NCBI GenBank assembly: GCA_965202585.1
Contig: OZ241831.1
Coordinates: 65,162,001-65,226,000, forward strand
Source of the DNA: Thalia democratica
Taxonomy: Eukaryota
Reading direction: 5' to 3'
DNA: 64,000 bases
Positions within the stretch are counted from its first letter, which is position 1, and each line of letters starts with the position of its first letter. Below the pieces are notes generated by a model that did no database searches, had not been told where the DNA came from, and saw nothing but the letters and a program-made list of their open reading frames with translations. Below, piece by piece: positions 463 to 62,740 of this stretch. The translations under genes were made by a program, and so were the position numbers.

Positions 463-1147
463 ATGGATAATTCTGGTTAAAATAAAAATAATATGGTTGT
501 TAAAAGTATTATTTTTGATGTTTTCAGGAAAACTTTCAAAACTAAATCCTACCTGAAAATTCACAAAAGAATACATAAGGAGAGAAACTATACAAATTAG
601 ATATTTGTGACAAATAAATTAAATTCAAAAGTAGCTTAACAAAACACATGTTGGTGCATAATAGTAGTAAAGAGTTACAATGTCATGTTTGTCATAAAAA
701 CTTTGCTTAAAAATCTAATTTAAATCGACATTTAGTTACTCACACCAAAGACAAACTTTTTAAATGTGATGTTTGTGAAAAAGGTTTACTCAAAAAAGTA
801 GTGTGAAGACACATATGTTAGTTCATACTCGTTTAAAAAAACATCATTGTGAAGTTTGTGAGAAAAAAATTACACAAAAAGGTAATTTAAAACAGCACAT
901 GTTGACTTTTTAGAAGAAGCCAATTAATTTATCACTTTAGAATTCATTAAAGAGAAAAACCTTATGGTCGTGCAGAATGTGACAAATGTTTACTGCTTGT
1001 TCAAATCGAGATAATCATATACATAAGTGTCATAAAACTTTAAGTAAGGATAAACAATCAAATTTGAAGTGTAAAATACAAAGAAGTATTGTTCATGATT
1101 ACCTTGAGACAATAGACAAATACAATTCTACGAATACCTATTGTTAG
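463..1147 (+). pseudogene. C2H2 zinc-finger pseudogene (N-terminal class A)
   Basis: ATG GAT AAT TCT GGT TAA: the Gln codon of paralogs is a stop at 478-480. There is a frameshift in the first TGEKP linker, further stops, loss of most of finger 6, and a recognisable tail ending TAG at 1147. Confidence 0.9.
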
Positions 1148-3839
1148 CACTTTGTTTTTTTTTTTTTTTTAATTTAGTTTATCGAAACATTTTTAACTAC
1201 TGAGTTTTTAGTTTTACACTGACCTATGACACTCTAACTTAATTTTATTATATTTGAGTAAGTTTATAGAATTTTAATAAGTTTACTTTAAAATTCATAC
1301 ATATATAGCCATTTAATGTTTTCATCGTTGTTGCTTTCATCTAAGGTTTTTATTTGAAACTCAAAAAAGATACTGAGAACACTATGAACTACTTTAAAAA
1401 ATTAATATGGTTTTTAAATTTGAAACATTTCCATTTTAAAATATTAGTTAACATGAATAAAATTTTAGATTAGTGCCAATTAAGAAATATTAAAATTTTC
1501 ATGTCTGTGTTGTAATAAAGTAGTTGAAATAATATGTAAGGTTTTGCAAAATATAAGAATAAAAACCGCAATAAGAAGAGAAAATATATTTAGGAGAAAC
1601 TTATATGCAAAATGATGTGCTAAATTCTATTTAATAAAACTCAGTTTTTTATTATTAAAAGTTATATAAGTGTTAGTGTGCGATGAATTTGTTTTTCCCA
1701 AAAAAAAAGAAGTAATTTAGTAACTAAGTAGTTAGAATTTAAACTTGATAAAAAAGTTTAAATATAAAGCATAGTTTACTTAAAATTGTTTTTCGTCTTT
1801 AAATAGTTATAACATTTTAATAATATCACAATCAAGTTTAAAATCTTGAAAAATTTGCAAAGAATTTGCTACACAAATAAGAATATCTTATTAAACAACG
1901 TAAAAAGTAAAAGGTACGCTAAAACTTTTAACGGTGCTTAACTTTTGCATGCTTCTAGTTTTAAAATAAAAGTTTGTTTGTAATGTTGCAAGTAAACATT
2001 CAAAAAAATGAAAAATTAGTCACAACTTATATTAAAAACGACCAATTTATTACAACCGTACATGAATAATAGTTATACTTAATATATTAAAGATAAATTA
2101 AATACGGATACTTTAAAATATTCTAGTTTATTGTGTATTTTTATTCCGTTTTTATTTTATAAAAAAAATTAAATTTTTTTACTCTAAATGAGTAAATTAA
2201 AAACAACACAGCATAATACAAATGATTAACAACCGATCAGAAATAAAGTTGTAATTAACTTACTAGAGATAAGTTTTAAAAACTTAAGTTAAGTTTTAGT
2301 TTTTGAAAAAAGGTTAAATACGTACATTGCTTGCACATTTTAAATATAATGCATAATTATAAAATAAATATGAGGAATTTTATGATAATAATATTAGTAA
2401 AACGTTTAGGTTCATGCCTTACATAAAAACAGTTTGGATTACGATTAAGCGTCGACTAGCTAAAATTGTCATAAATAATAGTGTTAAAAAAATTTTTAGT
2501 AAAGAACTTTTTTGTTTTGCGATAGTGACCGAAAATTGAGGGTCTTTGAAATTCACAATCGGGCATATCTGTATATATTATAAAAAATTAGAAAGTTGGT
2601 AAAAAAACACCGACTCTTGAAAACACTCAAAAAGTCGAGCCCTAATCCAATGGCATTTTTTTCGTAAGAGCAGCGTTTTCTAGAATAAAAAAAATGTTAG
2701 TTACATTTTAAGATAAGGAAAATAATTGGAGTTAACGCTTGGAAATTTTTAAAAAATTATAAAAAAATGTTATTCTTGTTATTCAAATTATTAAATTCTT
2801 CGATAATCAAAAATTGTTAACGCTCATACTTTAATCTATCATACAGATTGATAACACGTTTAGATTGACTGTTGTATAAAGTTAGTTTGTTTATTTAAAA
2901 AAATTTAAGCTAGATTTTATAAAATTTGTTTGCATGGTGACAAAATAGTTAGTAAACATCAGAAAAAATGTTTAAAGTGTAGAAATAAAGTAAAAATTCA
3001 GTGTACTAAAAATTGTCAAGTAAAACGATTTCTTATAAAGTTATAGATAATACTGTTAAAGAGACAAATATTTCTTTCTCAAGTATGCTTAAGCACTTAT
3101 AAGAAATAAAAAAAGTTTGTTTTTTAACTATTAATAAACTTGTTAATTACAGCCCCTTCTAATATTTGATTAAATATAAGTAGCCAATCAGAAATAAATA
3201 ACTACATAAAAAAAAGTAATTAAATTTTTTTTATAGACTGCTGTATTTTAGAGAAACGAGGATCAAGAAAGCTACTTTTACTTAAATAGTTTTTCGTTTA
3301 CTACAAAGTAATACAATTTATTTAACAGTAAACATATGTTTTATTTATTGTGACTACAAGTGTGCATATAAATTATTTTAATGTGCACAAAAAATTTAAT
3401 GATATGAAAAAATATATGTTCCATTATATTTATAGTACCAGATCCTATCAAAAAATATATTCAATTTATTATTTAATATTATTTTAATTAAGATGCACTA
3501 AAACACGGTTATAGCATTTATTAAAAAGTTATAAAAATTTTTCAAATACGGTTTTATACTTACAAATTTATAGAATTAGTGATCTTATAACTAAATAAAT
3601 GAGTATGTTTGTAAATCATCAAAATATATTCATGAATCATAGAATTAAACAATAAAGATATAAATTGTGTTATTGACCAAATAAAACATGTTAATTTTTT
3701 ATGGTTTTATCTGATAGGTTACAAACTTAAAATCTTTATGTTGATATTATGATACGTTATTAACTTATAGTAAACAGATTTGACAAATGTAGTATAAAGA
3801 TATCTACTTTTAGTTGTTATAAGGTTTTGTTTGCTAACT

Positions 3840-4571
3840 ATGGATAAAAATGGACCAACTGGGAGTTATTTAAATGCTAAATGTATTACTTGTGATGTTT
3901 GCAAGAAAAGTTTCAAATATAAGTCAAATTTTACAGTTCACAAAAGATTTCATACTGGTGAAAAACCCCATAAGTGTAAAAAATGTGAGAAAACTTTTGC
4001 TTGGAAAGGCAGTTTAACGAAACACATGTTGGTACATAGTGGTATAAAAGAATTTCAATGTATGGTTTGTTTAAAAAAAATTGCATATAAACATCACTTG
4101 AAAGAGCACATGGTTACTCATACTAAAGAAAAAGCATTTCAATGTGATTTGTGTGACAAATATTTTACACTAAAAAGTAATGTAAAAACACACATGTTAG
4201 TTCATACTGGCATAAAAGATTTTCAATGTGAAATTTGTCAGAAGAAGTTTTCTAAAAAATATAATTTGAAAAGTCATATATTGATTCACACCAAACTTAA
4301 ACATCATGAATGTGATATTTGCAGGAAGAAGTTTACTCTAAAAGGAAATTTAGTAAAACACTTTAGGATTCATTTAGGAGAAAAACCGTTTGGATGTGCA
4401 GAATGTGGAGAATGGTTTACTCAAAGTTCTAGTCGAAATACGCATATAAAAACTCACCATAAGGAGTTATGTAAAGTAAAACAATCAGAACTGAAGTGTA
4501 AAATTCAAAGAAGTATTGTTCATGACTACCTTAAGACAACAATATCTGAATACAATTCTGAATATCTTTAA
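3840..4571 (+). CDS. 7-finger C2H2 zinc-finger protein, N-terminal class B (MDKNGPTGSYLNAKC...), 243 aa
   Basis: Open frame with seven CxxC..HxxxH fingers, TGEKP/LGEKP linkers and the conserved tail. ATG at 3840 is preferred over the TTG at 3831 by alignment to the class B paralog start at 47146. Confidence 0.92.
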   Translation: MDKNGPTGSYLNAKCITCDVCKKSFKYKSNFTVHKRFHTGEKPHKCKKCEKTFAWKGSLTKHMLVHSGIKEFQCMVCLKKIAYKHHLKEHMVTHTKEKAFQCDLCDKYFTLKSNVKTHMLVHTGIKDFQCEICQKKFSKKYNLKSHILIHTKLKHHECDICRKKFTLKGNLVKHFRIHLGEKPFGCAECGEWFTQSSSRNTHIKTHHKELCKVKQSELKCKIQRSIVHDYLKTTISEYNSEYL

Positions 4572-7500
4572 TATTAGCGGTTATTTTTATATAAAACTAC
4601 TTTATAAAACTGAGAATATGTGCTAAATGATGTACAAATGAGTATCAAAAAAATCTTTATTTTAATCCACAATGATTTACTTTTGTGTTTATTTTTATAC
4701 GTTCAATGTTCTAGTTGCAAATTTCAAAATAAAAAAATTAAACCTCTAAATATTATTATTTTCTATATGTTTGTTTCTTTTTTTGAAAAAAATTAAAAGG
4801 AACGTACGATCTAAAAGCAGTAATTTTTGTGGTTTATTGAACAAAAAAAATACAAAAAAAGTTTTTGGGTCAATGATATCGATACGCAAAAAGACCACTC
4901 GGTCATCGAGTTGTATACCCATTTAATCAAAATTATAATGAGATAACTTAACAGTCAAAATCTAAAATCTCGATTATTGTATATTAAAATGAATAATACG
5001 AAGATGAAACTATTAAAATTAATTTTGTTCACATATATCTAACATTATATACACAAATAAAATATATTGAACTCTGCACCAAATGCGAAAATTTCTATCT
5101 GAAGTGTCTATTATTTTAAATTTATCAACGTTTTAGCAAACAATTTAACATTTTATATGAGTAAAATATGAGAAAAAAACATAAATAAAGTTGAATTTTT
5201 TCTTCAAAGTATGTTTATAATTTTAAACTTTTTACATATTTCAAATTATTAAAAAATATGCGAAAACAAATAAAGCTATAACACTAAAAAGAAAAAGAAA
5301 AAAAAAAAAACACATATAAAATAAAGCTGCAATATTCAAAATATAAAATAAAATAAAGCTGTTCCAAAAAGCAAAATTTTGCTTGAATTAGATAAAAAGT
5401 ATAATGAAATATATCATTTTTAATAAAAGTTATTAGTTCTTACAAACTTGAATAAAAGTCTAAATATAGGAGTTTAACTATACCAAAATGTAAATATTAA
5501 CAAACACAAAAAAGACTTAAATAGTAAATAAAATAAGATAAATAAATAAAATAAAAAACACTAATAATCATAAAATAAGTCAATTTTATAATAATTTTAA
5601 TTTTTAGCAGTGACATCAGCTCATGATTTAAGTATTTAACTTTTTTTTGTTTTCCAGCAAAAATATATTAAGATAATTTTAATTTTACTTGAGTAAGCTA
5701 AAGTGTAGACTAGGTAATAAAATTATTTATTAACACATTAACAAACTACAAATAGAAAAAAAAAAAGTATTACGACTTTCTACAAACTAGACTGGACCAA
5801 TGCTACCCAGTTAATATACTCAAAAAAATATAAATACCTACTCGGATGCAAAATGAATACAAATCTACTGTTTATAAATGAAACAAACATCTTATGAAAA
5901 CTCTATTAATTCAATTGATCATTTATTAAACTATACTTCAGTTCAACCTGAAATTTTCCAATATGACTTTGGTTTAATAATTTATTAGAAAGCCTGTCCA
6001 AAGTTTACTACCTTGATAAGATAGAAATTTGTGACCATTACTGATTTTAAATTATAGTAAGAAAAAATTGGTTTTTTTGAGGACGTTGTTGAATGGATAT
6101 GTAACTTATTTATATTTTCAAATTAACACTTATTATTTACTGGTAAAAAGTTATCTATAAATTAAAACAGAAAAACTCCTAAACTATATTTGAATAAATT
6201 TTTGACACTTAATATATTTTTGTTAATTTTATATTTATTTCACTCTTGTTATACTTTTTATAGTGAATGTACCTTAGTGCTTTATTTAAGATTTCATTAA
6301 CTATTCTTTTATTGGTTCTGCCCTAGCATAACAGACCGTACCTTATATGGCTCATTAAAAATAAATAAAAATAAAAGTATAAATATAATGTATAGAAATA
6401 TTTTTATCTTAATTTAATTTTTATTATTTCGTTCCGTTATTTTAATTAATCTTAAAAAAAAATTTAAGAAGTTTAGCTTATTTTTGGTGACAAACAAAAC
6501 TAAAACGAGTATTTTGAAAACGACTGTTTACGACTTTAGTAAATGAGAAAAATTCATAACTAGTTTCTTCGTTTTTAAAGTTATTGTAACCTTAATAACT
6601 TTTAAAGTTATTAATATATATTAAAAAAATTAGTCTAAATAATATGATTAAATAAAGCAAAGGCTTTTTTTCTAATTTGAAATTTTGAGTAGTTTATACT
6701 TTTCTTTTATAATGGTTTATTTTTTTAAGTTTTAGAAAAACTTAAAATTTATTTTTTTTTTTGGAATTTACACGCAAACACTACAATTAGAATTTTTTTG
6801 ATAAAACTATACTTGAAAAAAAAAAGAATTAATCAGACATTTTAAAATGGTGTAACACTATTCTTTATATTACTATTAAATTATATTTCTTATGATCTGA
6901 GTACCTAAGATAATGTTTTTTAATTGTAATTAAATGTAGTGTTATAAAAAAAAATATACGTTATTTAACTTCAATTATCTAAATATATTGTTTTAACTTC
7001 TTCCATAAATAGTTTATACTTGAAATGTTTAGAAGTATAAGTAAATTAAAGAAAAAAAATCATTTGGCTTATTTTGTTAAGAAAATATTGTTAGAATTTA
7101 TTAATTTCAAGCTTACACTTTAAAATAAAACTGAACAAATTGTAAGTTTAAAAGAATAACTAAAGGATTTAAAGTTATTTTTTGTAAAAAAAAAGAGTAA
7201 CAACTTTAAAAATATTAGTTTTTTCAAGGTACAATTAAGAAGCAATCTCTTCAGTAATTTACATTAAAATCTAAATAAAAATTATGAACCTTTTATCCTT
7301 TTATGCAAAAGAAACAAATTAGGTGATCAATGGCTGAACTATAATAAATACTAAGCAATCATTTATTAGAAATTAAATACAATTTAAGGTGACTAAATGA
7401 TTAGTTTAACTTATTACACTATATATACGATTCTCTTGTTTTTATGTTGACATAATTTCTAACTTAGCATTATCAAAAACATTACCGCAAGGATTAATGA

Positions 7501-9611: not shown

Positions 9612-10507
9612 TTTATATTGACACTAACTAATTTTCTAAAAAAGTATCGTTTGGTTTAAACTACCACAAATTAAGATAACATATCTAAACAACACAGAAG
9701 TAAAAGTTTAGAAAAATATAATAATAATTAGTTTTGTTTAGTGAAAAACAATTGTAAGTAATTAAGAAGTGTTTTCTGTCCAGATTATTACTTCATATCT
9801 CATCAAATTTGTATAAATATTAGTTTACCTACGTAAGATAAAAGAAAAATTTTAACCTAAATAAAATAAATTAGTTAAGTATTTGAAAAAAAATGATCCG
9901 GACTATAATAGAATTTTTTTATAAGTAAACATAAAATTTTTTAATTTAATAAAAAAACAGCTTAAGTCCTGTATAATAAAAAGTTTTCAAGTAATTTTAA
10001 GAGTTATAATTGTTTCAGGGTAATTAGAAAATCATTTTAGGATTTAAAAACAAAATAATTTCAGAAATGTAAACTTTTTTAATAATAATTCCAACTAAAA
10101 TAAAGTTTTATGTACAGAGCTTTGGTTATATATTATTGCTTGTTTTTAATTTTAAATTTTATAGTTGATTTTGACTTTGTATTTGTATCTTTTAGTCAAC
10201 AGGCAATCGAATAAGTTGTATAAACAAATTAAAAATAACCAGTCTTTTTGTACAAGTTGTTATTTCGAAAACAGATAATATATTAAATCATTAATATCTT
10301 ATGATAAAATAGCTATTTTTAGCTTAAATTTATGAAATTAGACGAGCTGAAATGAAAACTTTTAAACTAGGCAAATTTTATTTGTTAAATAGTTTTTAGT
10401 GATAAATAGTTGTCATTAAACAAATAATTATTCATTAATTAAAATTAAATGCACCAACCTCTAGTTTTCACATTATTAGAAATATTTTTAGCACTTAAGT
10501 TAAAATT

Positions 10508-11236
10508 ATGGGTAATTTTGGTCAAGACAAAAGTACTAAAGTTGTTAAAAATGTTTCTTGTGATGTTTGCAAGAAAACTTTCAAAACTAAATCCTACCTG
10601 AAATATCACAAAAGAATACATACAGGAGAAAAGCCATACAGTTGTGATATTTGTGACAAAAAATTTATCATTAAAGGCCATTTAACAAGTCATATACTGG
10701 TACATAGTGGTAAGAAAGAGTTTCAATGTCATGTTTGTCATAAGACATTTGCAAAAGTATCTAATTTAAAACAACATTCATTTACTCACACAAAAGATAA
10801 ACTTTTCAAATGTGAAATATGTGACAAACGTTTTGCTCAAAAAAGTCATGTAAAAAAACATATGTTGGTTCATACTGAAATAAAAGAACATCAGTGTGAA
10901 GTTTGCAAAAATAAGTTCTTTTGGAAAAGTAATTTAAAACAACACATGTTAACTCATACTAAAATAAAAGCTCTTGAATGTGATATTTGCAAGAAAAAAT
11001 TCAGTCAGAAAAGTGGTTTAATTAAACATTTTAGAATTCACTTAGGAGAAAAACCGTTTGGATGTGCAGAATGTGGAAAATGGTTTACTCAAGCTTCTAA
11101 TCGTGATACGCATATAGGAACTCATCATAAGGAACTAAATAAAGAACAACAGTTAAAACTGAAGTGTAAAATACAAAGAAGCATTGTTCATGACTATCTT
11201 AAAACAATAGACAAATACAATTCTATTTATAGTTAA
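10508..11236 (+). CDS. 7-finger C2H2 zinc-finger protein, class A, 242 aa
   Basis: Intact ORF, all 7 fingers with complete zinc ligands, conserved tail. Confidence 0.93.
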   Translation: MGNFGQDKSTKVVKNVSCDVCKKTFKTKSYLKYHKRIHTGEKPYSCDICDKKFIIKGHLTSHILVHSGKKEFQCHVCHKTFAKVSNLKQHSFTHTKDKLFKCEICDKRFAQKSHVKKHMLVHTEIKEHQCEVCKNKFFWKSNLKQHMLTHTKIKALECDICKKKFSQKSGLIKHFRIHLGEKPFGCAECGKWFTQASNRDTHIGTHHKELNKEQQLKLKCKIQRSIVHDYLKTIDKYNSIYS

Positions 11237-14439: not shown

Positions 14440-15150
14440 ATGGATTATTCTGGCCAAAACAAAAGTAATACGATTGTTAAAAGTGTTTCTTGTGATGTTT
14501 GCAAGAAAACTTTCATAACTGAATACTACCTGAAATTCCACAAAATAATACATACAGGTGAAAAATCATACAAATGGGATATTTGCGACAAAAGATTTGA
14601 CATTAATTGTAGGTTAACAAGTCGTATGCTGGTACATAGTGGTAGGAAAGAGTTTCAATGTCATGTTTGTCATAAGAAGTTTGCTCGAAAAGCTTACGTA
14701 AAACAACACATGGTTACTCACACCAAAGATAAACTTTTCAAATGTGATATATGTGAAAAAAGTTTTGCTCGAAAATATCATGTAAAAACACATATGTTAG
14801 AACATACTGGAATTAAAGAACATCAGTGTGAAGTTTGTAAGAAGAAATTTTCTCTAAAAGTTAATTTGAAACGACACATCATGATTCATACCAAATTAAA
14901 AGCACATGAATGTGATATTTGCAAGAAGAAGTTTTCACATAAAAGCCATTTAGTCAGACACTACAGAATTCACTAAGGCGAAAAACCTTATGGTTGCGCA
15001 GATTGTGGCAAATGGTTTACTGATAATTCTACTCGAAATAGGCATATACATGCTCATCATAAGGAACTTAGTAAAGAAAAGCAACAAGAATTGAAGTGTA
15101 AAATACAAAGAAGCATTGTTTATGACTATCTTAAAACAATATCTGAATAA
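14440..15150 (+). pseudogene. C2H2 zinc-finger pseudogene or truncated gene (178-aa ORF)
   Basis: TAA at 14974-14976 replaces the Leu of LGEKP. Finger 7 and the tail continue in frame to a second premature TAA (15148-15150). Finger 2 has lost a Cys (to W) and a His (to R). Confidence 0.85.
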
Positions 15151-21760: not shown

Positions 21761-22483
21761 TTGTGTGATTACGGTCAAAACAAAAGCAATATGGTTGTTA
21801 AAAGTGTTTTTTGTGATGTTTGCAAAAAATCTTACAAAACTAAATCCTACCTGAAAATTCACAAAAGAATACATGCAGGAGAAAAACCATACAAATGTGA
21901 TAATTGTGACAAAAAATTTATTACTAAACGTAGCTTGACAACTCACATGTTGGTACATGGTGGTGAAAAAGAGTTTCAATGTCATGTTTGTCAAAAAAGT
22001 TTTGCTATAAAATCTAGATTAAAACAACATTCAGTTACTCACACCAAACTTTTTAAATGTGATTTGTGTGAAAATAGTTTTACTTATAAAAGTAGTGTGA
22101 AGACACACATGTTAGTTCATACAGAAATAAAAGAACATCAGTGTGAAGTTTGTGAGAAGAAGTTTTCTCTAAGTAGTAATTTGAATCGTAATATGTTGAC
22201 TCATACTAAAGTAAAAGCTTATAAATGTGATATTTGCAAGAAAAAATGCAGTCAGAAAAGTGATTTAGTCAAACACTTTAGAATTCACTTAGGAGAAAAA
22301 CCTTATGGTTGTGCAGAATGTGGAAAGTGGTTTACTGATTGTTCTAGTCGAAATAGACATATAAAAATACACCATAATGAACTAAGTAAAGAAAAGCAAT
22401 CAGAACTGAAGTGTAAAATACAAAGAAGTATTGTTTATGATTATCTCAAGGCAATATTTGAATACAACTCTAAATATCCTTAA
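21761..22483 (+). CDS. 7-finger C2H2 zinc-finger gene with ancestral ATG mutated to TTG (next in-frame ATG at 21791); possibly an early pseudogene
   Basis: ORF is open to the normal stop. TTG TGT GAT aligns with ATG TGT GAT at 41889. It has a 6-bp deletion in linker 3-4 (HTKLFKC vs HTKDKLFKC), His to Asn in finger 5, and Phe to Cys in finger 6. Confidence 0.7.
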   Translation: MCDYGQNKSNMVVKSVFCDVCKKSYKTKSYLKIHKRIHAGEKPYKCDNCDKKFITKRSLTTHMLVHGGEKEFQCHVCQKSFAIKSRLKQHSVTHTKLFKCDLCENSFTYKSSVKTHMLVHTEIKEHQCEVCEKKFSLSSNLNRNMLTHTKVKAYKCDICKKKCSQKSDLVKHFRIHLGEKPYGCAECGKWFTDCSSRNRHIKIHHNELSKEKQSELKCKIQRSIVYDYLKAIFEYNSKYP

Positions 22484-25732: not shown

Positions 25733-26467
25733 ATGGATGATTCTGGTCAAAACAAAAGTATTATGGTTAAAAAAACTGTTTCTTGTGATGTTTGCCAGAA
25801 AACTTTCAAAACTAAATATTACCTGAAAATTCACAAAAAAATACATACTGGAGAAAAACCATACAAATGTGAAGTTTGCGGCAAAACATTTGTTATTAAA
25901 GGTAGGTTAACAAGACACATGTTGGTACATAGTGGTAAGAAAGAGTTTCAATGTCATGTTTGTTTGAAAGAATTCGCACATAATCATGTTTTAAAACAAC
26001 ACATGGTTACTCATACTAAAGAAAAAGCTTTCAAGTGTGATATATGTGACAAAAGTTTTACTAAAAAAAGTAACGTTAAAAGACATATTTTAATTCATAC
26101 TGGAATAAAAGAATATCAGTGTGAAGTTTGCGAGAAGAATTTTTCTCAAAAAAGTCATTTAGAACAACACATGTTGACTCATACTAAATCAAAAGATCAC
26201 GAATGTGATATTTGCAAGAAGAAGTTTACTCAGAAAAGTGATTTAGTCACACATTTTAGAAATCACTTGGGAGAAAAACCTGATGGATGTTCAGATTGTG
26301 GAAAATGGTTTACTAGTAGCTCTAATAGATGTAAGCATATACGTACTTGTCATAAAGAACTAAGTAAAGAGCAACAATCAAAACTAAAGTGTAAAATACA
26401 AAGAAGTATTGTTCATGACTATCTTACGACAATAGCTGAATACAATTCTAAGGACACGTGTCCTTAG
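25733..26467 (+). CDS. 7-finger C2H2 zinc-finger protein, class A, 244 aa
   Basis: Intact ORF, 7 fingers, conserved tail; finger 7 ends HIRTCH. Confidence 0.92.
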   Translation: MDDSGQNKSIMVKKTVSCDVCQKTFKTKYYLKIHKKIHTGEKPYKCEVCGKTFVIKGRLTRHMLVHSGKKEFQCHVCLKEFAHNHVLKQHMVTHTKEKAFKCDICDKSFTKKSNVKRHILIHTGIKEYQCEVCEKNFSQKSHLEQHMLTHTKSKDHECDICKKKFTQKSDLVTHFRNHLGEKPDGCSDCGKWFTSSSNRCKHIRTCHKELSKEQQSKLKCKIQRSIVHDYLTTIAEYNSKDTCP

Positions 26468-27544: not shown

Positions 27545-28080
27545 ATAGATAATAATGGATCATCTGGAAATTACTTAAGTGCTAAATGTATTAGTTGCGA
27601 TGTTTTCAAGAAAAGTTTTATACATAAATCACAGTTGGTCTCTTTACAGAAGATTTAATACGGGGGAAAGGCCATATAAATGTGAACATTGTGACAAAAG
27701 GTAGTTTTTCACAATGCTGGTACATACTGGAGTTTTAATACTATGTTTGTCATAATTTATATTCTTAAAAAGGCCAATTAAAACTAATTTATTTACCCAC
27801 AAACACTTTTAAATGTGATTTGTGTCATAACAGTTATTTTTAAAAGGCGATGTGATAAAATATATGTTAGTTCTTACTGTAAAGGAAGATTTTTAGTGTA
27901 AAGTTTGTAAAAGGAAATTTTATTGGAAAAGTAGTATGAACCTTCATATGTTAACTCATTTGAAATAAAAAGACCATGAATGTGGTATTTGCAAGAAGAA
28001 ATTTACTTAAAAAACAAGTTTAGTTAATCATTTTAGAATTCACTTAAGAGAAAAACCATATGCTTGTGCAAAATGTTGAG
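27545..28080 (+). pseudogene. C2H2 zinc-finger pseudogene, class B, 3'-truncated
   Basis: ATA in place of ATG, then DNNGSSGNYLSAKCISCDVF, homologous to the 3840 copy. Several stops and frameshifts. Homology ends in finger 7 (TGT GCA AAA TGT TGA) and the tail is absent. Confidence 0.85.
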
Positions 28081-30630: not shown

Positions 30631-31146
30631 AATCAAAGTTAATTGTTACATATCATAACTAACACCCCAAATTCATTAAAAAAACTGTAAAACATTTAAT
30701 CTTAATCTTTGTTTAGCAACATTTTAATTTATAATAAAATAGGAGTATAAGCTGATCTAAATGTTCTTAAATTTTAATTAACTTTAAAGTTTGAATAACT
30801 TTTTGAGAAAAATATTTCAAGTCATACATAAATCTTGTAGTAATATAACTTTGACTTACTTTAATCTTTTTGAATATGGAAGTTTTAAAATGAAACAAAT
30901 AGTAATTTAATTTTCTGGCACAACATAGAAATAAATTCATATAAAAGTTGTAATTTATAATTACAGTTTTAATATATTAAGAAAAATACATTAAAGTTAA
31001 TTTAAAAAATGTTTTTAAAACATTTTCAAAAAATAAAAACGTTTCGATTGTTTATTGAACGATAAGAAAAAGCGCTTTAAAATATAGCAATCTCTGTTTT
31101 TTTTTACAGAATATTAAACTTAACTTTTAGAACTTGTGTTTAAACT

Positions 31147-31884
31147 ATGAGTGATTCTAGTCAAAACAAAAGTAACATGATAGTTGAAAGTGTTTCCTGT
31201 TATGTTTGCAAGAAAACTTTCATAACTAAATCCTACCTGAAAATTCACAAAAGAATTCATACAGGAGAAAAACCATACAAATGTGATGTTTGCGATAAAA
31301 GTTTTACTCAAAAAAGTAATTTAAAAAGACACATGTTGGTACATAGTAAAAAGAAAAAGTTTCAATGTCATGTTTGTCATAAAAATTTTGCACGAAAAGC
31401 TCACGTAAAAGAACACATGATTACTCACACTAAAGATAAATATTTTAAGTGTGATATATGTGACAAAAGTTTTACTAAAAAAAGTAGCGTTAAAAGACAT
31501 ACTTTAATTCATACTGGAATAAAAGAACATCAGTGTGAAGTTTGCAAGAAGAAGTTTTCTCGAAAATGTAATTTGAATCAACATACGTTGACTCATACTA
31601 AATTAAAAGATCACGAATGTGATATTTGCAAGAAGACGTTTACTCAGAAAGGAAGTTTAGTTAATCACTTCAGAATTCACTTAGGAGAGAAACCTTACGG
31701 CTGTGCAAAATGTGGAAAATGGTTTACTGCTAGTTCTGATCGATGTCTGCATATACGTACTTGTCATAAGGAACTAAGTAAAGAACAACAATCTAAATTA
31801 AAATGCAAAATACAAAAAAGTATTGTTCATGACTATCTTAAAACAATATCTGATTATAATTCTAAATATTCTGATTTTCGGTAA
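31147..31884 (+). CDS. 7-finger C2H2 zinc-finger protein, class A, 245 aa
   Basis: Intact ORF, 7 fingers, conserved tail; finger 7 ends HIRTCH. Confidence 0.92.
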   Translation: MSDSSQNKSNMIVESVSCYVCKKTFITKSYLKIHKRIHTGEKPYKCDVCDKSFTQKSNLKRHMLVHSKKKKFQCHVCHKNFARKAHVKEHMITHTKDKYFKCDICDKSFTKKSSVKRHTLIHTGIKEHQCEVCKKKFSRKCNLNQHTLTHTKLKDHECDICKKTFTQKGSLVNHFRIHLGEKPYGCAKCGKWFTASSDRCLHIRTCHKELSKEQQSKLKCKIQKSIVHDYLKTISDYNSKYSDFR

Positions 31885-35763: not shown

Positions 35764-36489
35764 ATGGGTGATTCTGGTCATAACAAAAGTATGTATGTCA
35801 AAAGTGTTTCTTGTGATGTTTGCGAGAAGACTTTTAAAAATAAATTATACCTGAAATATCACAAAAGAATACATACAGGAGAAAAACCATACAAATGTGA
35901 TATTTGTGACAAAAGATTTATAATTAAAGACAGCTTAACAAGACACATGCTGGTACATAGTGGTAAGAAAGAGTTTCAATGTTATGTGTGTCATAAGAAC
36001 TTTGCTCAAAATTATAACTTAAAACTACATTACGTTACACATACCAAAGATAAACTTTTCAAATGTGATATATGTGACAAAAGTTTTGCTCGAAAAAGTC
36101 ATGTAAAAGCACATATGTTAGTTCACACTAAAATAAAAGAACATCACTGCAAAGTTTGTGAGAAGAAGTTTTCTCAGAAAAGTATTTTGAAACGTCATAT
36201 GTTGACTCACACCAAAGTGAAAGCCCACGAATGCGATATTTGCAAGAAAAAAATCAGTCAGAAAAGTGATTTAGTCAGACATTTTAGAATTAACTCTGGA
36301 GAAAAACCTTATGGATGTGCAGAATGTGGAAAATGGTTTACTCATCCTTCTGGTCGAAATAAGCATATACGTTTTCATCATAAGGAATTAAGTAAAGAAA
36401 AACAATCAGAACTGAAGTGTAAAATACAAAGAAGTAATGTTCATGACTATCTTAAGTCAATATCTGAATACAATTCTAAATATAATTAA
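35764..36489 (+). CDS. 7-finger C2H2 zinc-finger protein, class A, 241 aa (finger 6 last His to Asn)
   Basis: Intact ORF; finger 6 ends HFRINSGEKP where paralogs have HFRIHLGEKP; conserved tail. Confidence 0.88.
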   Translation: MGDSGHNKSMYVKSVSCDVCEKTFKNKLYLKYHKRIHTGEKPYKCDICDKRFIIKDSLTRHMLVHSGKKEFQCYVCHKNFAQNYNLKLHYVTHTKDKLFKCDICDKSFARKSHVKAHMLVHTKIKEHHCKVCEKKFSQKSILKRHMLTHTKVKAHECDICKKKISQKSDLVRHFRINSGEKPYGCAECGKWFTHPSGRNKHIRFHHKELSKEKQSELKCKIQRSNVHDYLKSISEYNSKYN

Positions 36490-41584: not shown

Positions 41585-41872
41585 GTAATCTAATAAGTAA
41601 CATGAAACAGATATTACAACAAATCAGCCTGAATTCATTTAAAAATAATTTGTTATTTCAGAAATAGATGATACGTTAATTGAGTACTATCTTAAAATAA
41701 AATGGACCTTTTTTAGCTTCAATTATTAAGTTTAACAAACTTAGATACAATTTACAAAACGAGCATTTTTTTATAAAATAGTTTTTTTTGATTTAAAGTT
41801 TTAATTAACAATTAATTATATAATAATCTAAATTAAGTACATCAATCCTCCACTATTGAACATAACTTTTAG
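41585..41872 (+). other. Predicted 5'-UTR intron of the class A zinc-finger genes (this copy as the example)
   Basis: Conserved donor-like caacag|gtaatc and acceptor-like ttttag| 16 nt before the ATG. Homologous pairs: 10203-10491 (GC donor), 14121-14423, 21480-21744, 35452-35746. Confidence 0.55.
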
Positions 41873-41888
41873 CACTTAAGTTAAAACT

Positions 41889-42614
41889 ATGTGTGATTCT
41901 GGTCAAAACATAAGTCAAATGGTTTCGAAAAGTGTTTTTTGTGATGTTTGTAAAAAGACTTTCAAAACTAAATCCTACCTGAAATATCACAAAAGAATAC
42001 ATACAGATGAAAAACCATACAAATGTGATATTTGTGACAAAAAATTTATAATTAAAAGTAACTTAACAAGTCACATGTTTGTACACAGCGGTAAAAAAGA
42101 CTTTCAATGTTTTGTTTGTCATAACAATTTTGCTCGCAAATCCGATTTAAAACAACATTTAGTTACTCACACAAAGGATAAACTTTTTAAATGTGTTGTT
42201 TGTGACAAAAGTTTTACTACAAAAGGTAATGTGAAGAGACACATGTTAGTTCATACTGGTTTAAAGGAACATCATTGTGAAGTCTGCAAGAAGAAGTTTT
42301 CCCAGAAGGGCGATTTGACACGGCATGTGTTGACTCATACTAATGTGAAAGAACATGAATGTGATATTTGTAAAAAGAAGTTTTCTCAGAAAGGAAGTTT
42401 AGTCAGACACTTTAGAATTCACTTAGGAGAAAAACCTTATGGTTGTGCAGAATGTGGAAAATGGTTTACTGACAATTCTCATCGAAATAGGCATATTAAA
42501 ACTCATCATAAGGAGTTAAGTAAAGAGCAACAATCAGAACTGAAGTGTAATATTCAAAGAAGCATTGTTTATGAATATCTTAAAACAATATCTGAATACA
42601 ATTCGAAGTATTAA
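41889..42614 (+). CDS. 7-finger C2H2 zinc-finger protein, class A, 241 aa
   Basis: Intact ORF, all 7 fingers complete, conserved tail. Confidence 0.93.
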   Translation: MCDSGQNISQMVSKSVFCDVCKKTFKTKSYLKYHKRIHTDEKPYKCDICDKKFIIKSNLTSHMFVHSGKKDFQCFVCHNNFARKSDLKQHLVTHTKDKLFKCVVCDKSFTTKGNVKRHMLVHTGLKEHHCEVCKKKFSQKGDLTRHVLTHTNVKEHECDICKKKFSQKGSLVRHFRIHLGEKPYGCAECGKWFTDNSHRNRHIKTHHKELSKEQQSELKCNIQRSIVYEYLKTISEYNSKY

Positions 42615-43331: not shown

Positions 43332-44028
43332 GTGAAATTAATAAACTACTCAAAGTTTTAAGTGTGATATTTGCGAGAAAGCTTTTAATTAAAAATCACA
43401 AGTTGAATGTCCATAAAACAACTCATACTATACTAAAACAAAATCGTACAAACGTTAAGATTGCGACAAACTTTTTCTAAGAAAAGCAATTTAACAAGAC
43501 ATACGTTGGTACTAAGTGGTATAAAAGGTTTTCAATGTTATGTTTGTGGAAAATACTTCGCACAAAGGTTATTTAAAGCGACATTTAGATACTCAAACTA
43601 AAGGAAAACTATACAAGTGTGATTTATGTTTAGAGTTTATGCAAGGAACTGTATTTTGAAGAAACATATGCTACTTCATATGTGATTAAAAGAGCATTAG
43701 TTTGAAGGTTGTAAGAAAAATTGCTCAAAAACATATTTTAAATAACTTGACTCATACTAAAGTATAAGCTCATGAATGTGATATTCGGAAGAAAAACTTT
43801 TCAATGAAGGATAATTTAGTCAATCACTTTATAATTCACTTAGGAGAGAGACCGTATGGTTGTGCAGAATGTGGAAAATGGTTTACTTACGCTTGTGCAA
43901 GAACTAGACATATTCGTACTTGTCATAAGAAACTAAGCAAAGAGCAACAATCAGAACTGAAGTGTAAAATACAAAGAACTTTTGGTCATGACTATCTTTA
44001 GTCAATATCTGAACATAATCTTAATTAG
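43332..44028 (+). pseudogene. Degenerate C2H2 zinc-finger pseudogene (finger 1 ends LNVHKTTH, third N-terminal class)
   Basis: KCDICEKAF at ~43360, then many stops and frameshifts through fingers 1-6. The 3' part [17 protein letters not shown]...[25 protein letters not shown] is well preserved. The 5' boundary is approximate. Confidence 0.85.
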
Positions 44029-47000: not shown

Positions 47001-47142
47001 AAATAAAAATATGGTTTATTAAAAAGTATATTGTAGTTATATTTTAAGTTGTATTTAAAAATGTGTATGAATTTGATTTACTTAATATATTATTTCTTTT
47101 TATTAGTTTTTCGCATTAAATAGTTTTTTTCTAAGAAGTTGA

Positions 47143-47872
<730 letters not shown>

Positions 47873-50800: not shown

Positions 50801-51407
50801 ATTCGTAACATTATCAAAAAAAAATTGTTCAATTTACGAATAGATGATCAAATAAAAAAGCATTATGTTTTGTTTTAGATTTATTAAATCATAGTGTAAG
50901 TGTTTAGAGATATATAAATGTTATTTGAGTCGGGTGAGGATGGAATATTATACTGACAGTTTATTTTACCTAATTTTAACTCTATTTGTTTGAATTAACT
51001 ATATAAATAGCGTTTTATGAAATGATACAAAAAGTTATAATTACAGATAGCATTATATCTAAACTATTACAAAAAATTAAATTTTAAGAGAAAGGCAATT
51101 GTTTGCTAAGTTAAAAATACAATTATGTATAAAATCAATTAGTTTTGTAAATTAAAGAATGTTTATTAATAAAAACTGTAAAAAACTACAAGAAAATTTA
51201 TTCTTTAATTAGAAATGTGATGATAAATTATCTAATGAAAATAACTGAACTATAACCAGTTTTAATTATACTTTCAGAGCACTTTTAACTAGATCTTATT
51301 TTTATATTAAGAGTTGAAAAATTTTCATTTCATACATATTTTATAGTTAAGTAAATAGAAACATCGAAAATTATTTTAGTTTGGATATTCTGAATATCTG
51401 AATATAA

Positions 51408-51981
51408 CTGAATATTCACAAAACAATTCATGCGGGAGAAAAGCCATACAAATGTAAAGACTGTGGTAAAAGTTTTAAGCGTAAAGGTGATTTGACAAAA
51501 CACATGTTGGTACATAGTGGTAAGAAGGATTTCCAATGTAATGTCTGTTTAAAATTATTTGCTCAAAAATGTAGTTTAAACCGACACATACAAACTCACA
51601 CTAAAGATAAACCATTCAAATGTAGCGAGTGTGATAAAAGCTTTACTCGAAAAGATAATAAAAAAGCTCATATGTTAATTCATATTGGTAAGAAAGTTTT
51701 TAAATGTGAAGTTTGTAAAAAGAAGTTTTAAAGAAAAGAAAATTTAAATTCTCATATGTTGACTCACACAAAAGTAAAGGCTATGAATGTGATATTTGCA
51801 AAAAGAAACTTATACATAAAAGTCAATTAGTTGATAACTTTAGAATTCACTTAGGAGAAAAACCTTATGGTTGTACGGAATGTGGAAAGTGGTTTACTGA
51901 ATGTTCTAATCGAAATAGACATATGAAAATTCACCATAAGGAGTTAAGTGAAGATCAACAATCAAAACTGAAGTGCAAAAT
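51408..51981 (+). pseudogene. C2H2 zinc-finger pseudogene truncated at both ends (last copy of the array)
   Basis: Starts at LNIHKTIHAGEKP (end of finger 1). Fingers 2-4 are intact, finger 5 has a TAA (51729-51731), and a frameshift precedes finger 6. The tail stops at LKCKI, where the inverted duplication begins. Confidence 0.85.
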
Positions 51982-52085
51982 AAGCGTTATAAAAGTAGGT
52001 TTTAAAACAAACACGCTAACAGTTTTTTTATAAGTATGTGGTGTACAAAAATACCTCTTGATCATCTAATCATACAACACATGCT

Positions 52086-60397: not shown

Positions 60398-62740
60398 ATG
60401 GGAAACTATTATTCACAACATTCACCATATTTACTCGAAGACAGTATAGAAAAAACACAAAGTTTAAAGCAAGTATTTAGAAAACACTTGAATAAATATC
60501 AAATTGGAAAGTCAGATCACGCAAATATTACTGCGGTGTTAAAAGCAGGTTGTGGACAGAATAACTTTAATGTTTCGTTTGATTTTCTTTACGAAAACTT
60601 TGGATACTTTAGAACAATAAAACATTTTAAGAACATCAAGAAAGGAACGTTTAACCTCACGAGTATATCTGATTTAACATTGCAAAACATGTTTAGTTTT
60701 TTAACTACAGGTAGTTGTTTTCTACTTTTTGAAACGCTTATATTTTAAATATTTTAAAATAAAAAGCAAATGTTAATGATCAAAAGGTTATAAAACATAT
60801 AGTTTTAAACATTACTGTATATTTTACTTTTATGTATTCCTACTAACCAAAAAACTTGAAGTATTTTTTTTTATATAATTCAAACAAAATAAGTAATAAC
60901 AGTAGTTAAATTTTTTAGAAGCGATTTTTACGATGTTATTTGTTAGTATTTAACAACACAAAATAAAATGTTTTCTAACTTAAGTTGAAATACTTGTTTA
61001 ATTTGTTTTATTTAACTAACATAAACAACAGAACTTAGCCAAAAACTATAAACTTACATATGAGAAAAAAAATACTTTTTTTCCTTATTAAAATGTATCT
61101 GTTCCTTATCTGGTAAAGTTTATATTTACATTTTATATAAGAAATTGTACAGTAATAATTATACAGTGTGATTTATAGAAAACTAATGTAGCTTTTTAAC
61201 TATAGGTAAATTAGAACTGAATCAAGCAAACATCATTGACTTATTAAAGGCAGAAGATTTACTTGGGGGTACAAAAGTTCAACAATATGTTTGCGAAGAA
61301 ATACTTACATTGGAAAACTACCATTTTTACTTTAAACTTTGTAAACTACTAAACCTCAGACACCTAAAAGAATACTTTTATAACATCTTCTTGCAGCATT
61401 ATCTTACAAAAATAGATGTAAAAACCTTTTATGAGCTGACTTATAAAGACATTGCTAATTTGATTGCTTCATCCCAGCTGAAAGTAGACTCAGAAATTGA
61501 AGTTTTCAATGCAGTGATAGATTGGATATCGTACAAAGAACGTGAACGTAAACAATTTATTCACGAACTTTTAAAACTAGTTCGATTACCTTTGTTAACA
61601 AAAGAAATAATAGTTGATGTTGTGCAAGCTCATCCTTTGTGCTCAAGCTCTTTTGAATGTAAAAATATAATTTTAAAGGCTCTAAAAGTCAAAGAAAACC
61701 ACCACATTTGCTCACCGAAAACATTGTTAGAAAATAGACACTACAGCAATATTATAAACAACAAAAGAGTAATGTTAATTGGCGGAAAAGATAGAGCTAC
61801 CAAAAATGTTAGAAAATTTTCTTGTTTGTACTACATAGACGGTATGAAAATGAAAAAGTATATGATAACAAGTGAAATGAACAAGCAAAGGTCAAGAAGC
61901 AGGGCTTTTGTTATTGGTACAAAAGTTTATTGTTTTTCAGGTGGCAGTGATTACACAAGCAAATTTCTTGATTTAAACTCTCTTGAAGTTTATTGCACAA
62001 AAAGTGATTGTTGGAAGTCACTGGCCCCCCTTAAAGGTGCGGGTTTCTCGCCAGGTTGTGATGACTTCTGTGGCTGCGCGTTTATGGGTAAAATATACAT
62101 AATTCACCATACTTATAATTTACACAAGCTATCGAACTGTTCGGTTTACGATCCCAGCAATGACCGATGGAATAAGCGAGCGAACTTGAATGTATCAAGG
62201 TTATTTGCATCTTGCACTGTGTTTAACGGTAAGTGTGTGGTAGTCGGCGGTAGAAAATTTAACAATATTAACGTAAACTTGAAAACAGTCGAAGCTTACG
62301 ACCACCATCTCAACAAATGGTCGTATTTGCCCGCTCAAACGCAAGTGAGTCGGTACAAATCGGGATTGATTTCGAAAGGAAACAAGATGTTTGTAATCAG
62401 TGGGGTGCAACGAGAATATTGTTTTTGGGGCGACCTAGTGACTCATGAAGTGTATGATTGCTCGACAAAGCAGTTTACTTTTATTGCAAACAACTATTTT
62501 ACAGAGCAATTTGCTTGGACTTATAGTTTTTATAACTCCGGTCGCCTTAAATGTTTGTACACCGTTGCTGACAAAATCTTTGTTTTCGATGATGTTTTCC
62601 CTTCGAATAATGACGGCAATTTAAAGATTCCTACTTATGACGTAACTAGAAATACGTGGTTTGAAACTTGCATAAAAACTTCAGTCATTGAAAACATTTC
62701 TGAGTATTCTTTTGTAGCCTTGCAAAAATATTTAATCTAA
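60398..62740 (+). CDS. BTB-BACK-Kelch (kelch-like) protein, two exons join(60398..60710,61206..62740), 615 aa
   Basis: A GT..AG intron 60711-61205 (actacag|gtagtt ... taactatag|gtaaa) joins the two ORFs in phase: FSFLTTG|KLELNQANIIDLLKAEDLL..YVCEE (BTB C-half). The BACK domain follows (LKVDSEIEVFNAVIDWI..ELLKLVRLPLL), then six kelch-like blades (e.g. KCVVVGG..EAYDHHLNKW). Total 1848 nt = 616 codons including the stop. Confidence 0.88.
60711..61205 (+). other. Predicted 495-bp phase-1 GT-AG intron of the kelch gene
   Basis: Canonical ends and AT-rich interior; removing it restores a continuous BTB domain in frame. Confidence 0.85.

Follow-up and report, generated by a model that had tools for sequence, protein, structure and literature searches.

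What is the conserved segment at the C-terminal end of a family of seven-finger C2H2 proteins in Thalia democratica: a separate effector domain, or a part of the last finger? The question is raised by a tandem array of small zinc-finger genes on contig OZ241831.1 (assembly GCA_965202585.1, positions 65,162,001 to 65,226,000 of the forward strand). This whole stretch of 64,000 nucleotides is called the window here, and coordinates are counted from its first letter. The original prediction, made from the letters of the window, had described a conserved tail of about 35 residues after finger 7 and had proposed that it is an amphipathic helix that recruits a co-repressor or mediates dimerization. 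Our analysis favors, tentatively and with a little less than even confidence, a different answer: structure prediction suggests that the tail does not stand free as a domain but extends the last finger, an atypical one, as a structured, family-specific C-terminal cap.

The genes of the array all lie on the plus strand, with a spacing of about 4-7 kb, and the G+C content of the window is 23%. A complete copy is a single uninterrupted open reading frame (ORF) of 240-246 codons, that is, a single coding exon, which encodes a 15-residue N-terminus, seven fingers with TGEKP-like linkers, and 35-40 tail residues. Six copies have both an ATG and an intact frame (Table 1), and 12 tails are recognizable in the window. 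As predicted, the tail follows finger 7 in every complete copy, and every copy that reaches its 3′ end carries one. The invariant histidine heading the tail is found at 4458, 11126, 15058, 22373, 26351, 31765, 36379 and 42507 in the copies of complete length, and broken copies have a tail too, at 1031, 43924 (decayed), 47762 and 51935 (frameshifted after KCKI). The coordinates first given for the tail of the copy at 3840 were correct and include the stop codon; the motif first given for it is the family consensus, against which this copy has three replacements (C for S, V for E, K for Q) and one inserted T. Eight copies compared with each other have a nucleotide identity of 0.75-0.86 inside the coding sequence, which drops to about 0.35 immediately beyond the stop codon and within ~30 nt of the ATG. 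Judged from these sequences, the copies are old duplicates with saturated flanks.

Selection was analyzed for eight paralogs, all from this window and probably including two recent pseudogenes. By the Nei-Gojobori method over all pairs, the tail core (34 codons) showed an amino acid identity of 0.82, 0.63 synonymous substitutions per synonymous site (dS), 0.086 non-synonymous substitutions per non-synonymous site (dN), and a ratio of the two (omega) of 0.14, with bootstrap ranges of 0.06-0.29 for omega and 0.36-1.08 for dS. The corresponding values (identity, dS, dN, omega) were 0.69, 0.59, 0.186 and 0.31 for all finger codons, 0.49, 0.50, 0.35 and 0.70 for the 15-residue N-terminus, and 0.30, 0.59, 0.59 and 1.0 for the recognition positions -1, 2, 3 and 6. 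The tail is therefore more conserved than the finger helices, as had been claimed, both at the recognition positions and at the other helix positions (identity 0.76); the zinc ligands (0.95) were the sole class above it. It is also the only well-conserved non-finger segment of the protein and the 34-codon stretch with the lowest omega of the whole coding sequence. Among random 34-codon sets drawn from finger codons that are neither recognition positions nor zinc ligands, only 0.06% had an omega as low.

With a maximum-likelihood codon model on a fixed tree, omega was estimated at 0.157 (tail), 0.199 (finger framework including the ligands), 1.51 (recognition positions) and 0.635 (N-terminus). 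Fixing the tail at an omega of 1 cost 21.6 log-likelihood units (2ΔlnL = 43.1) and was rejected; fixing it at the framework value of 0.199 cost only 0.36, so that no difference between the two was seen. Constraint on the tail equals that on the finger scaffold and clearly acts on the protein. Its codons vary in the way that had been described: LKC is encoded by CTG AAG TGT in 6 of 10 tails laid out by codon, by TTG AAG TGT in another 2, by TTA AAA TGC in the gene at 31147 and by CTA AAG TGT in the gene at 25733, and AGT/AGC, GAC/GAT and TAC/TAT alternate among the tails. A tail dS as low as the tail dN, named beforehand as the outcome that would speak against selection, was not what we found (0.63 versus 0.086). 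Conservation ends sharply at the ATG and at the stop codon. The recognition positions of all seven fingers in the eight copies have omega values between 1.0 (Nei-Gojobori) and 1.5 (maximum likelihood), as opposed to 0.2-0.3 for the framework, which is the classical pattern of diversifying DNA specificity.

The tail belongs to no named domain, in agreement with the original prediction. Full-length proteins searched against Pfam (E-value up to 1) gave only zinc-finger models, every match lying within the fingers, and no KRAB, SCAN, ZAD or BTB. The tail alone gave chance-level Pfam matches at E-values up to 10 (MlaC and NADH_u_ox_C, 13-15 bits versus cut-offs of 25-27), eight tails had no match in NCBIfam, and a profile of finger 7 plus tail matched PDB sequences only up to profile position 32, which is still inside the finger. 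The salp genome papers that a literature search listed make no mention of C2H2.

Relatives were found in metagenomes. A word search limited to the tail gave one protein, a 139-residue fragment on a Tara Oceans metagenome contig, and no relative was found among JGI metagenome contigs. An 11-tail profile (HMMER) searched against 1.84 billion representative sequences gave 16 matches at E-values up to 0.001, without a named domain among them. Fifteen are fragments of 49-117 residues that consist of a finger or finger remnant followed by a tail, and several of them are themselves broken; the sixteenth, a 1,681-residue protein in which a 10-residue stretch of the profile matched 13 times, was taken as spurious. 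The ten fragments that were looked up all come from ENA metagenome assemblies (four of six records name Tara Oceans), and the contigs retrieved have 22-27% G+C. The relatives include a second subfamily, ...ELKCKIPR[ST]IVH[DE][YW]L[ND][YH]IDNF. Numbered as in the copy at 31147, in which H207 is the fourth zinc ligand of finger 7, the core conserved across 23 tails comprises H207, L210, Q215, L218, K219, C220, I222, I226, V227 and L231. After L231, the subfamilies differ (TISEYNS versus [YH]IDNF). As a sequence, then, the tail appears to be new, a lineage-restricted family without a named relative. In kind, it is a variant of known things, namely the constant modules of expanded zinc-finger families and the terminal-finger extensions of the Kaiso type.

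Finger 7, to which the tail is attached, is atypical. It has invariant residues at G185, G190, W192, F193, T194 and R199, and reads Gly-Lys-Trp-Phe-Thr (31684-31767 in the copy at 31147) in place of the usual x-K-x-F-x. R199 occupies helix position +4, which is Leu or Val in fingers 1-6, so that the canonical core Leu is absent from finger 7. The recognition positions of finger 7 still vary (dN 0.59), and it therefore probably still reads DNA. The position ahead of the invariant H207 carries C, H, L, Y or R, or is missing; because of this variation, finger 7 is to be read as C-x2-C-x12-H-x3/4-H without a spare pair of zinc ligands. A second zinc site that uses the residue before H207 was considered and ruled out for the same reason, and the other candidate ligand, H228, is His or Tyr in about equal proportions.

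Two AlphaFold runs agree on the order of elements in the tail. The full-length protein (8 sequences) was predicted with a helix at 212-217, a beta-bridge at K219 and a helix at 226-241, at a predicted local distance difference test score (pLDDT) of 83-93 for residues 201-220 and 31-55 beyond. Finger 7 plus tail (66 residues, 17 sequences) was predicted with a mean pLDDT of 86.5 and a predicted template modeling score of 0.59; the 10-residue blocks had values of 86, 93, 96, 94, 78 and 85, and the last six residues 63. The elements of this model are strands at 5-7 and 12-14, helices at 17-27 and 33-39, a strand at 40-42 (K219-K221) and a helix at 45-62. The amphipathic helix of the original prediction is retained for the last part of the tail, since the helical hydrophobic moment of S225-S239 is 0.42, in the top 2% of shuffles. 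It did not hold as one continuous helix, and a single long helix or coiled coil was ruled out: both runs agree on helix-strand-helix, L218-K-C-K-I222 alternates between hydrophobic and basic residues in a strand-like manner, and Pro is tolerated at residue 223, the strand-helix junction (8 of 23 tails; Q in the reference copy).

From these elements, the following arrangement can be proposed. After H207, the chain would form a short helix (K212-L218) and return as the short strand L218-K-C-K-I222, the hydrophobic side of which (L218, C220, I222) would pack on finger 7 and turn its two-stranded hairpin into a three-stranded sheet. The chain would end in an amphipathic helix (R224-Y241) with I226, V227, Y230, L231, I234 and Y237 on its hydrophobic face. 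The tail would thus probably complete the hydrophobic core of a finger that has Arg at the site of the core Leu and Trp before the core Phe. Finger 7 and tail together, about 60 residues, would form a terminal module that stays constant, whereas the residues with which the seven fingers read DNA diversify. Such a module could stabilize the end of the array, by analogy with the C-terminal extension of Kaiso; exposed conserved residues (K219, K221, R224) may add non-specific DNA contacts, and the conserved polar face of the last helix would be left free for a partner.

The analogy with Kaiso (ZBTB33) comes from structural comparison. Foldseek gave no match in the PDB at E-values up to 0.001. Ten of its top twelve rows were Kaiso entries, with 28-43 aligned columns, which is more than a single finger, TMq values of 0.41-0.53 and probabilities of up to 0.99. 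VIA-align placed Kaiso zinc finger 3 with its C-terminal extension first, both in a second look and in a Foldseek-independent scan of 48,161 PDB chains. Kaiso residues 546-596 aligned with model residues 1-53 at a Z-score of 4.8-5.2 and a root-mean-square deviation of 4.2 Å over 50 residues; the next matches were the archaeal-virus finger AFV1p06 (Z 4.4) and zinc fingers 1-2 plus C-terminal domain (CTD) of ZIM-2 (Z 3.1).

Kaiso has a conserved 31-residue extension, in which residues 579-587 add a beta-strand to zinc finger 3 and the minor groove is bound by residues 592-604; efficient binding depends on this extension (PMC9779254). Like the tail, this extension, which is also conserved in ZBTB4 and ZBTB38, consists of about 30 conserved residues directly after the last C2H2 finger, and the extra strand on the sheet of the last finger is predicted for LKCKI of the tail as well (model residues 40-42, with the bridge at K219). 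There is no sequence similarity between the two, and the tail profile alone gives no Kaiso match in PDB sequences. The Kaiso extension, with its conserved prolines, is disordered unless DNA is bound and has a terminal loop that enters the minor groove, whereas the tail is predicted as helix-strand-helix, is nearly charge-neutral and lacks conserved prolines in its consensus. Kaiso also has a BTB effector domain, which these seven-finger proteins do not, and its extension is part of the DNA-binding domain and not an effector.

Two other groups of segments invite comparison. KRAB, SCAN, ZAD, BTB/POZ, FiNZ and FAX share with the tail that a constant, constrained non-finger module accompanies a tandemly amplified family in which DNA-contact residues diversify. 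These domains are N-terminal, have 40-120 residues and an independent fold, and are usually encoded by an exon of their own; the tail, in contrast, is C-terminal, has 35 residues, shares its exon with the fingers and is predicted to be fused to the last of them. None of these domains had a Pfam model that matched. The basic C-terminal arm of TZAP and the CTD of ZIM/HIM-8 lie C-terminal to fingers, as the tail does, and modulate DNA binding via minor-groove or phosphate contacts or by docking on fingers (PMC11605055). Neither is related to the tail in sequence; the TZAP arm is basic, unlike the tail, and the ZIM/HIM-8 CTD is larger.

Several observations weigh against a capped last finger. The Kaiso match is weak (Z about 5, deviation 4.2 Å, Foldseek E-value 0.09), and a Z-score under 8 may reflect a common arrangement only. 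The five AlphaFold models of the 66-residue construct are spread over pLDDT values of 65-86, the last helix reaches only 44-55 in the full-length run, and AlphaFold tends to dock an amphipathic helix on whatever a short construct offers. The non-recognition positions of finger 7 are no more conserved than those of the other fingers (identity 0.73, omega 0.43). The net charge of the tail is close to zero, its last helix containing D229 and E236, which is a poor fit for a binder of DNA grooves. Finally, the packing of the tail on finger 7 is deduced from predicted elements, and the expression and 5′ gene structure of the family are presumed.

The strongest alternative stays close to the original prediction. 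The tail, or at least its last helix (S225-Y241), could be an autonomous protein-interaction module that recruits a co-repressor or chromatin factor, or mediates homo- or heterodimerization among the paralogs, as KRAB, SCAN, ZAD and BTB do. Outside the fingers, the tail alone is strongly conserved, omega being 0.64-0.70 in the first 15 residues of the protein, and a constant effector would fit with recognition residues that diversify (omega 1.0-1.5). An effector at the other end is not likely: in most copies, a conserved TTTAG stands 17-20 nt before the ATG with an in-frame stop between the two, so that an upstream coding exon is improbable. The polar residues Q215, K219, S225, D229, N238 and S239 are conserved like the hydrophobic ones and therefore suggest some interface, with DNA or protein, beyond the stability of the fold. 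The low pLDDT of the amphipathic last helix in the full-length model is also what would be expected for a helix that requires a partner. However, its hydrophobic face, at about 2.5 heptads, is little for a coiled coil that stands alone, the region after L231 differs between the subfamilies, and both AlphaFold runs predict with confidence that the first half of the tail packs on finger 7. No known effector or dimerization family was matched. On balance, we consider an autonomous module possible but doubtful.

Known short linear motifs probably do not account for the tail either. The tail lacks the Phe of what we take to be the eh1/Groucho motif (FxIxxIL) and the fourth hydrophobic residue that a SUMO-interaction motif presumably has. 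With the Mad1-type Sin3-interaction helix, as we take it to read, it has IQ…DYL in common, at a spacing one residue short and without the Ala-Ala pair. To what we assume to be leucine-rich nuclear export patterns the fit is loose, as for any amphipathic helix.

Capping and partner recruitment are not exclusive: the first 15 residues of the tail may lie against finger 7, leaving the last helix to offer a conserved surface.

A further alternative concerns origin. The core of the tail may derive from a captured gene fragment of the ribosomal protein uS17 (RPS11), such as a retrocopy, that was later exapted. Among PDB sequences matching the 11-tail profile at E-values below 10, 17 of 18 are uS17/RPS11 (the other is a nucleotidyltransferase, E-value 0.6), and with a 23-tail profile all 18 are. 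The tail core (4500-4560 in the window, and equivalents) shares 12 of 20 residues with a segment of eukaryotic uS17/RPS11, with one two-residue gap, and the second subfamily, IPRTIVHDYLDYIDNF, agrees with uS17 at additional residues (T, Y-I, F). The E-values are not significant, at 0.08 (0.083) for 11 tails and 0.066 for 23 (15-16 bits), so that the deeper profile brought no gain. Similarity is limited to the 20 residues, with nothing upstream or downstream. Moreover, uS17 did not reach the E-value threshold of 0.001 in the search of 1.84 billion representatives, and Ribosomal_S17 was not found in the Pfam and NCBIfam searches. The segment in uS17 is beta-structure within an OB fold, while the tail is predicted as strand plus helix and not as an OB fold. 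Capture from uS17 is thus improbable.

It is least credible, to the point of being negligible, that the conservation has no function at the protein level and instead reflects young or converted copies, constraint on the nucleotides (an RNA element or small-RNA target, or an overlapping ORF) or a decayed, frameshifted eighth finger: same-strand tandem copies do favor conversion, and some codons are invariant (GTT for V227 and CAA for Q223 in 10 of 10 tails laid out by codon), but the tail dS of 0.63 is as high as the 0.5-0.6 elsewhere in the gene at an omega of 0.15, the flanks are unalignable, the tail is decayed or frameshifted in heavily broken copies, stop codons crowd the other reading frames of the tail DNA, and for an eighth finger there is one conserved Cys (C220), no zf-C2H2 match at E-values up to 10, and a BLAST E-value of 0.29 between tail and fingers.

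The capped-finger reading can be taken further. Finger 7 and tail could be an undescribed composite domain, a C2H2 finger that lacks the canonical core Leu and depends on a helix-strand-helix extension, and that serves as the constant docking or effector module of a rapidly diversifying, lineage-specific family in pelagic tunicates. It would be a C-terminal, finger-fused counterpart of KRAB, ZAD and SCAN, possibly derived from a captured ribosomal-protein fragment. As a whole, this proposal is unlikely to hold. The expanded zinc-finger families of vertebrates, insects and fish each have a family-specific constant domain (KRAB, SCAN, ZAD, FiNZ) that decides what the variable array does. If the module recruits a partner, the design of variable fingers plus a constant handle would have been invented independently in the sister group of vertebrates. 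If it only stabilizes or extends DNA binding, it would join Kaiso as a second case in nature of this little-studied type of finger extension. Conserved non-finger segments in zinc-finger families are not surprising in themselves, and the organism is a non-model one; a capped atypical last finger that resembles the Kaiso extension is nevertheless a concrete structural hypothesis, testable by simple biochemistry.

The copies of the window are collected in Table 1. Broken copies, frameshifted or truncated, lie at about 400-1147, 27600-28050, 43500-44028, 47117-47872 and 51400-52030, and the zinc-finger array undergoes birth and death. In the decayed copies at 27600-28050, 43500-44028 and 51400-52030, the tail is lost in one, decayed in one and frameshifted in one.

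Table 1. Gene copies and tails of the zinc-finger family in the window, with residue numbers of the copy at 31147
Feature	Position	Strand	Remarks
Pseudogene tail	1034-1147	+	Frameshift upstream; tail in frame, about six replacements versus consensus
Seven-finger gene with tail	3840-4571	+	Intact; most divergent copy; ATG at 3840 likely start; ORF 3831-4571
Finger 7 of the 3840 copy, GEKPFGCAECGEWFTQSSSRNTHIKTHH	4377-4460	+	Atypical; predicted packing surface for the tail
Tail of the 3840 copy with stop codon (4569-4571)	4461-4571	+	Directly after last His of finger 7
Gene copy	10508-11236	+	Intact; tail 11129-11236
Recent pseudogene	14440-15150	+	In-frame stops after finger 6 and within tail (ISE*); tail 15061-15150 otherwise conserved
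Copy with intact frame, TTG instead of ATG	21761-22483	+	Tail 22376-22483
Gene copy	25733-26467	+	Intact; tail 26354-26467
Gene copy, reference for residue numbering	31147-31884	+	Intact; tail K208-R245 = 31768-31884
Gene copy	35764-36489	+	Intact; tail 36382-36489
Gene copy	41889-42614	+	Intact; tail 42510-42614
Decayed pseudogene tail	43924-44028	+	Several frameshifts; reads IQRTFGHDYL*SISEHNLN*; example of relaxed constraint
Tail of copy with frameshifted fingers 1-5	47765-47872	+	Fingers 6-7 and tail still in frame
Pseudogene tail	51935-52030	+	Frameshift after KCKI

The TTG at 21761-21763, where the paralogs have ATG, marks either a very recent pseudogene or the use of another start. About 20 nt upstream of the ATG, TTTTAG followed by a CACTTAAGTTAAAACT-like sequence is conserved (for example at 31125-31146, 41867-41888 and 10486-10507). 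To judge by its letters, this motif looks like a 3′ splice acceptor, as would belong to an intron in the 5′ untranslated region or to spliced-leader trans-splicing. No RNA runs covering the locus were found, only two DNA runs of one study.

Two neighboring genes can be mentioned, one in the metagenomes and one in the window. On two independent marine metagenome contigs with 26-27% G+C, a decayed remnant of finger plus tail is followed, about 1.4 kb downstream, by a gene for a 319-residue protein of the trypsin family (5627-6586 on the ENA contig L004, from Tara Oceans, and 1600-2559 on the ENA contig L005). In the source organism, or in a relative of it, the finger-plus-tail family therefore also occurs dispersed, away from tandem arrays. 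In the window itself, an ORF of 476 codons at 61310-62740 on the plus strand encodes BACK and Kelch repeats; there is no BTB domain within this ORF, and an upstream exon may carry one.

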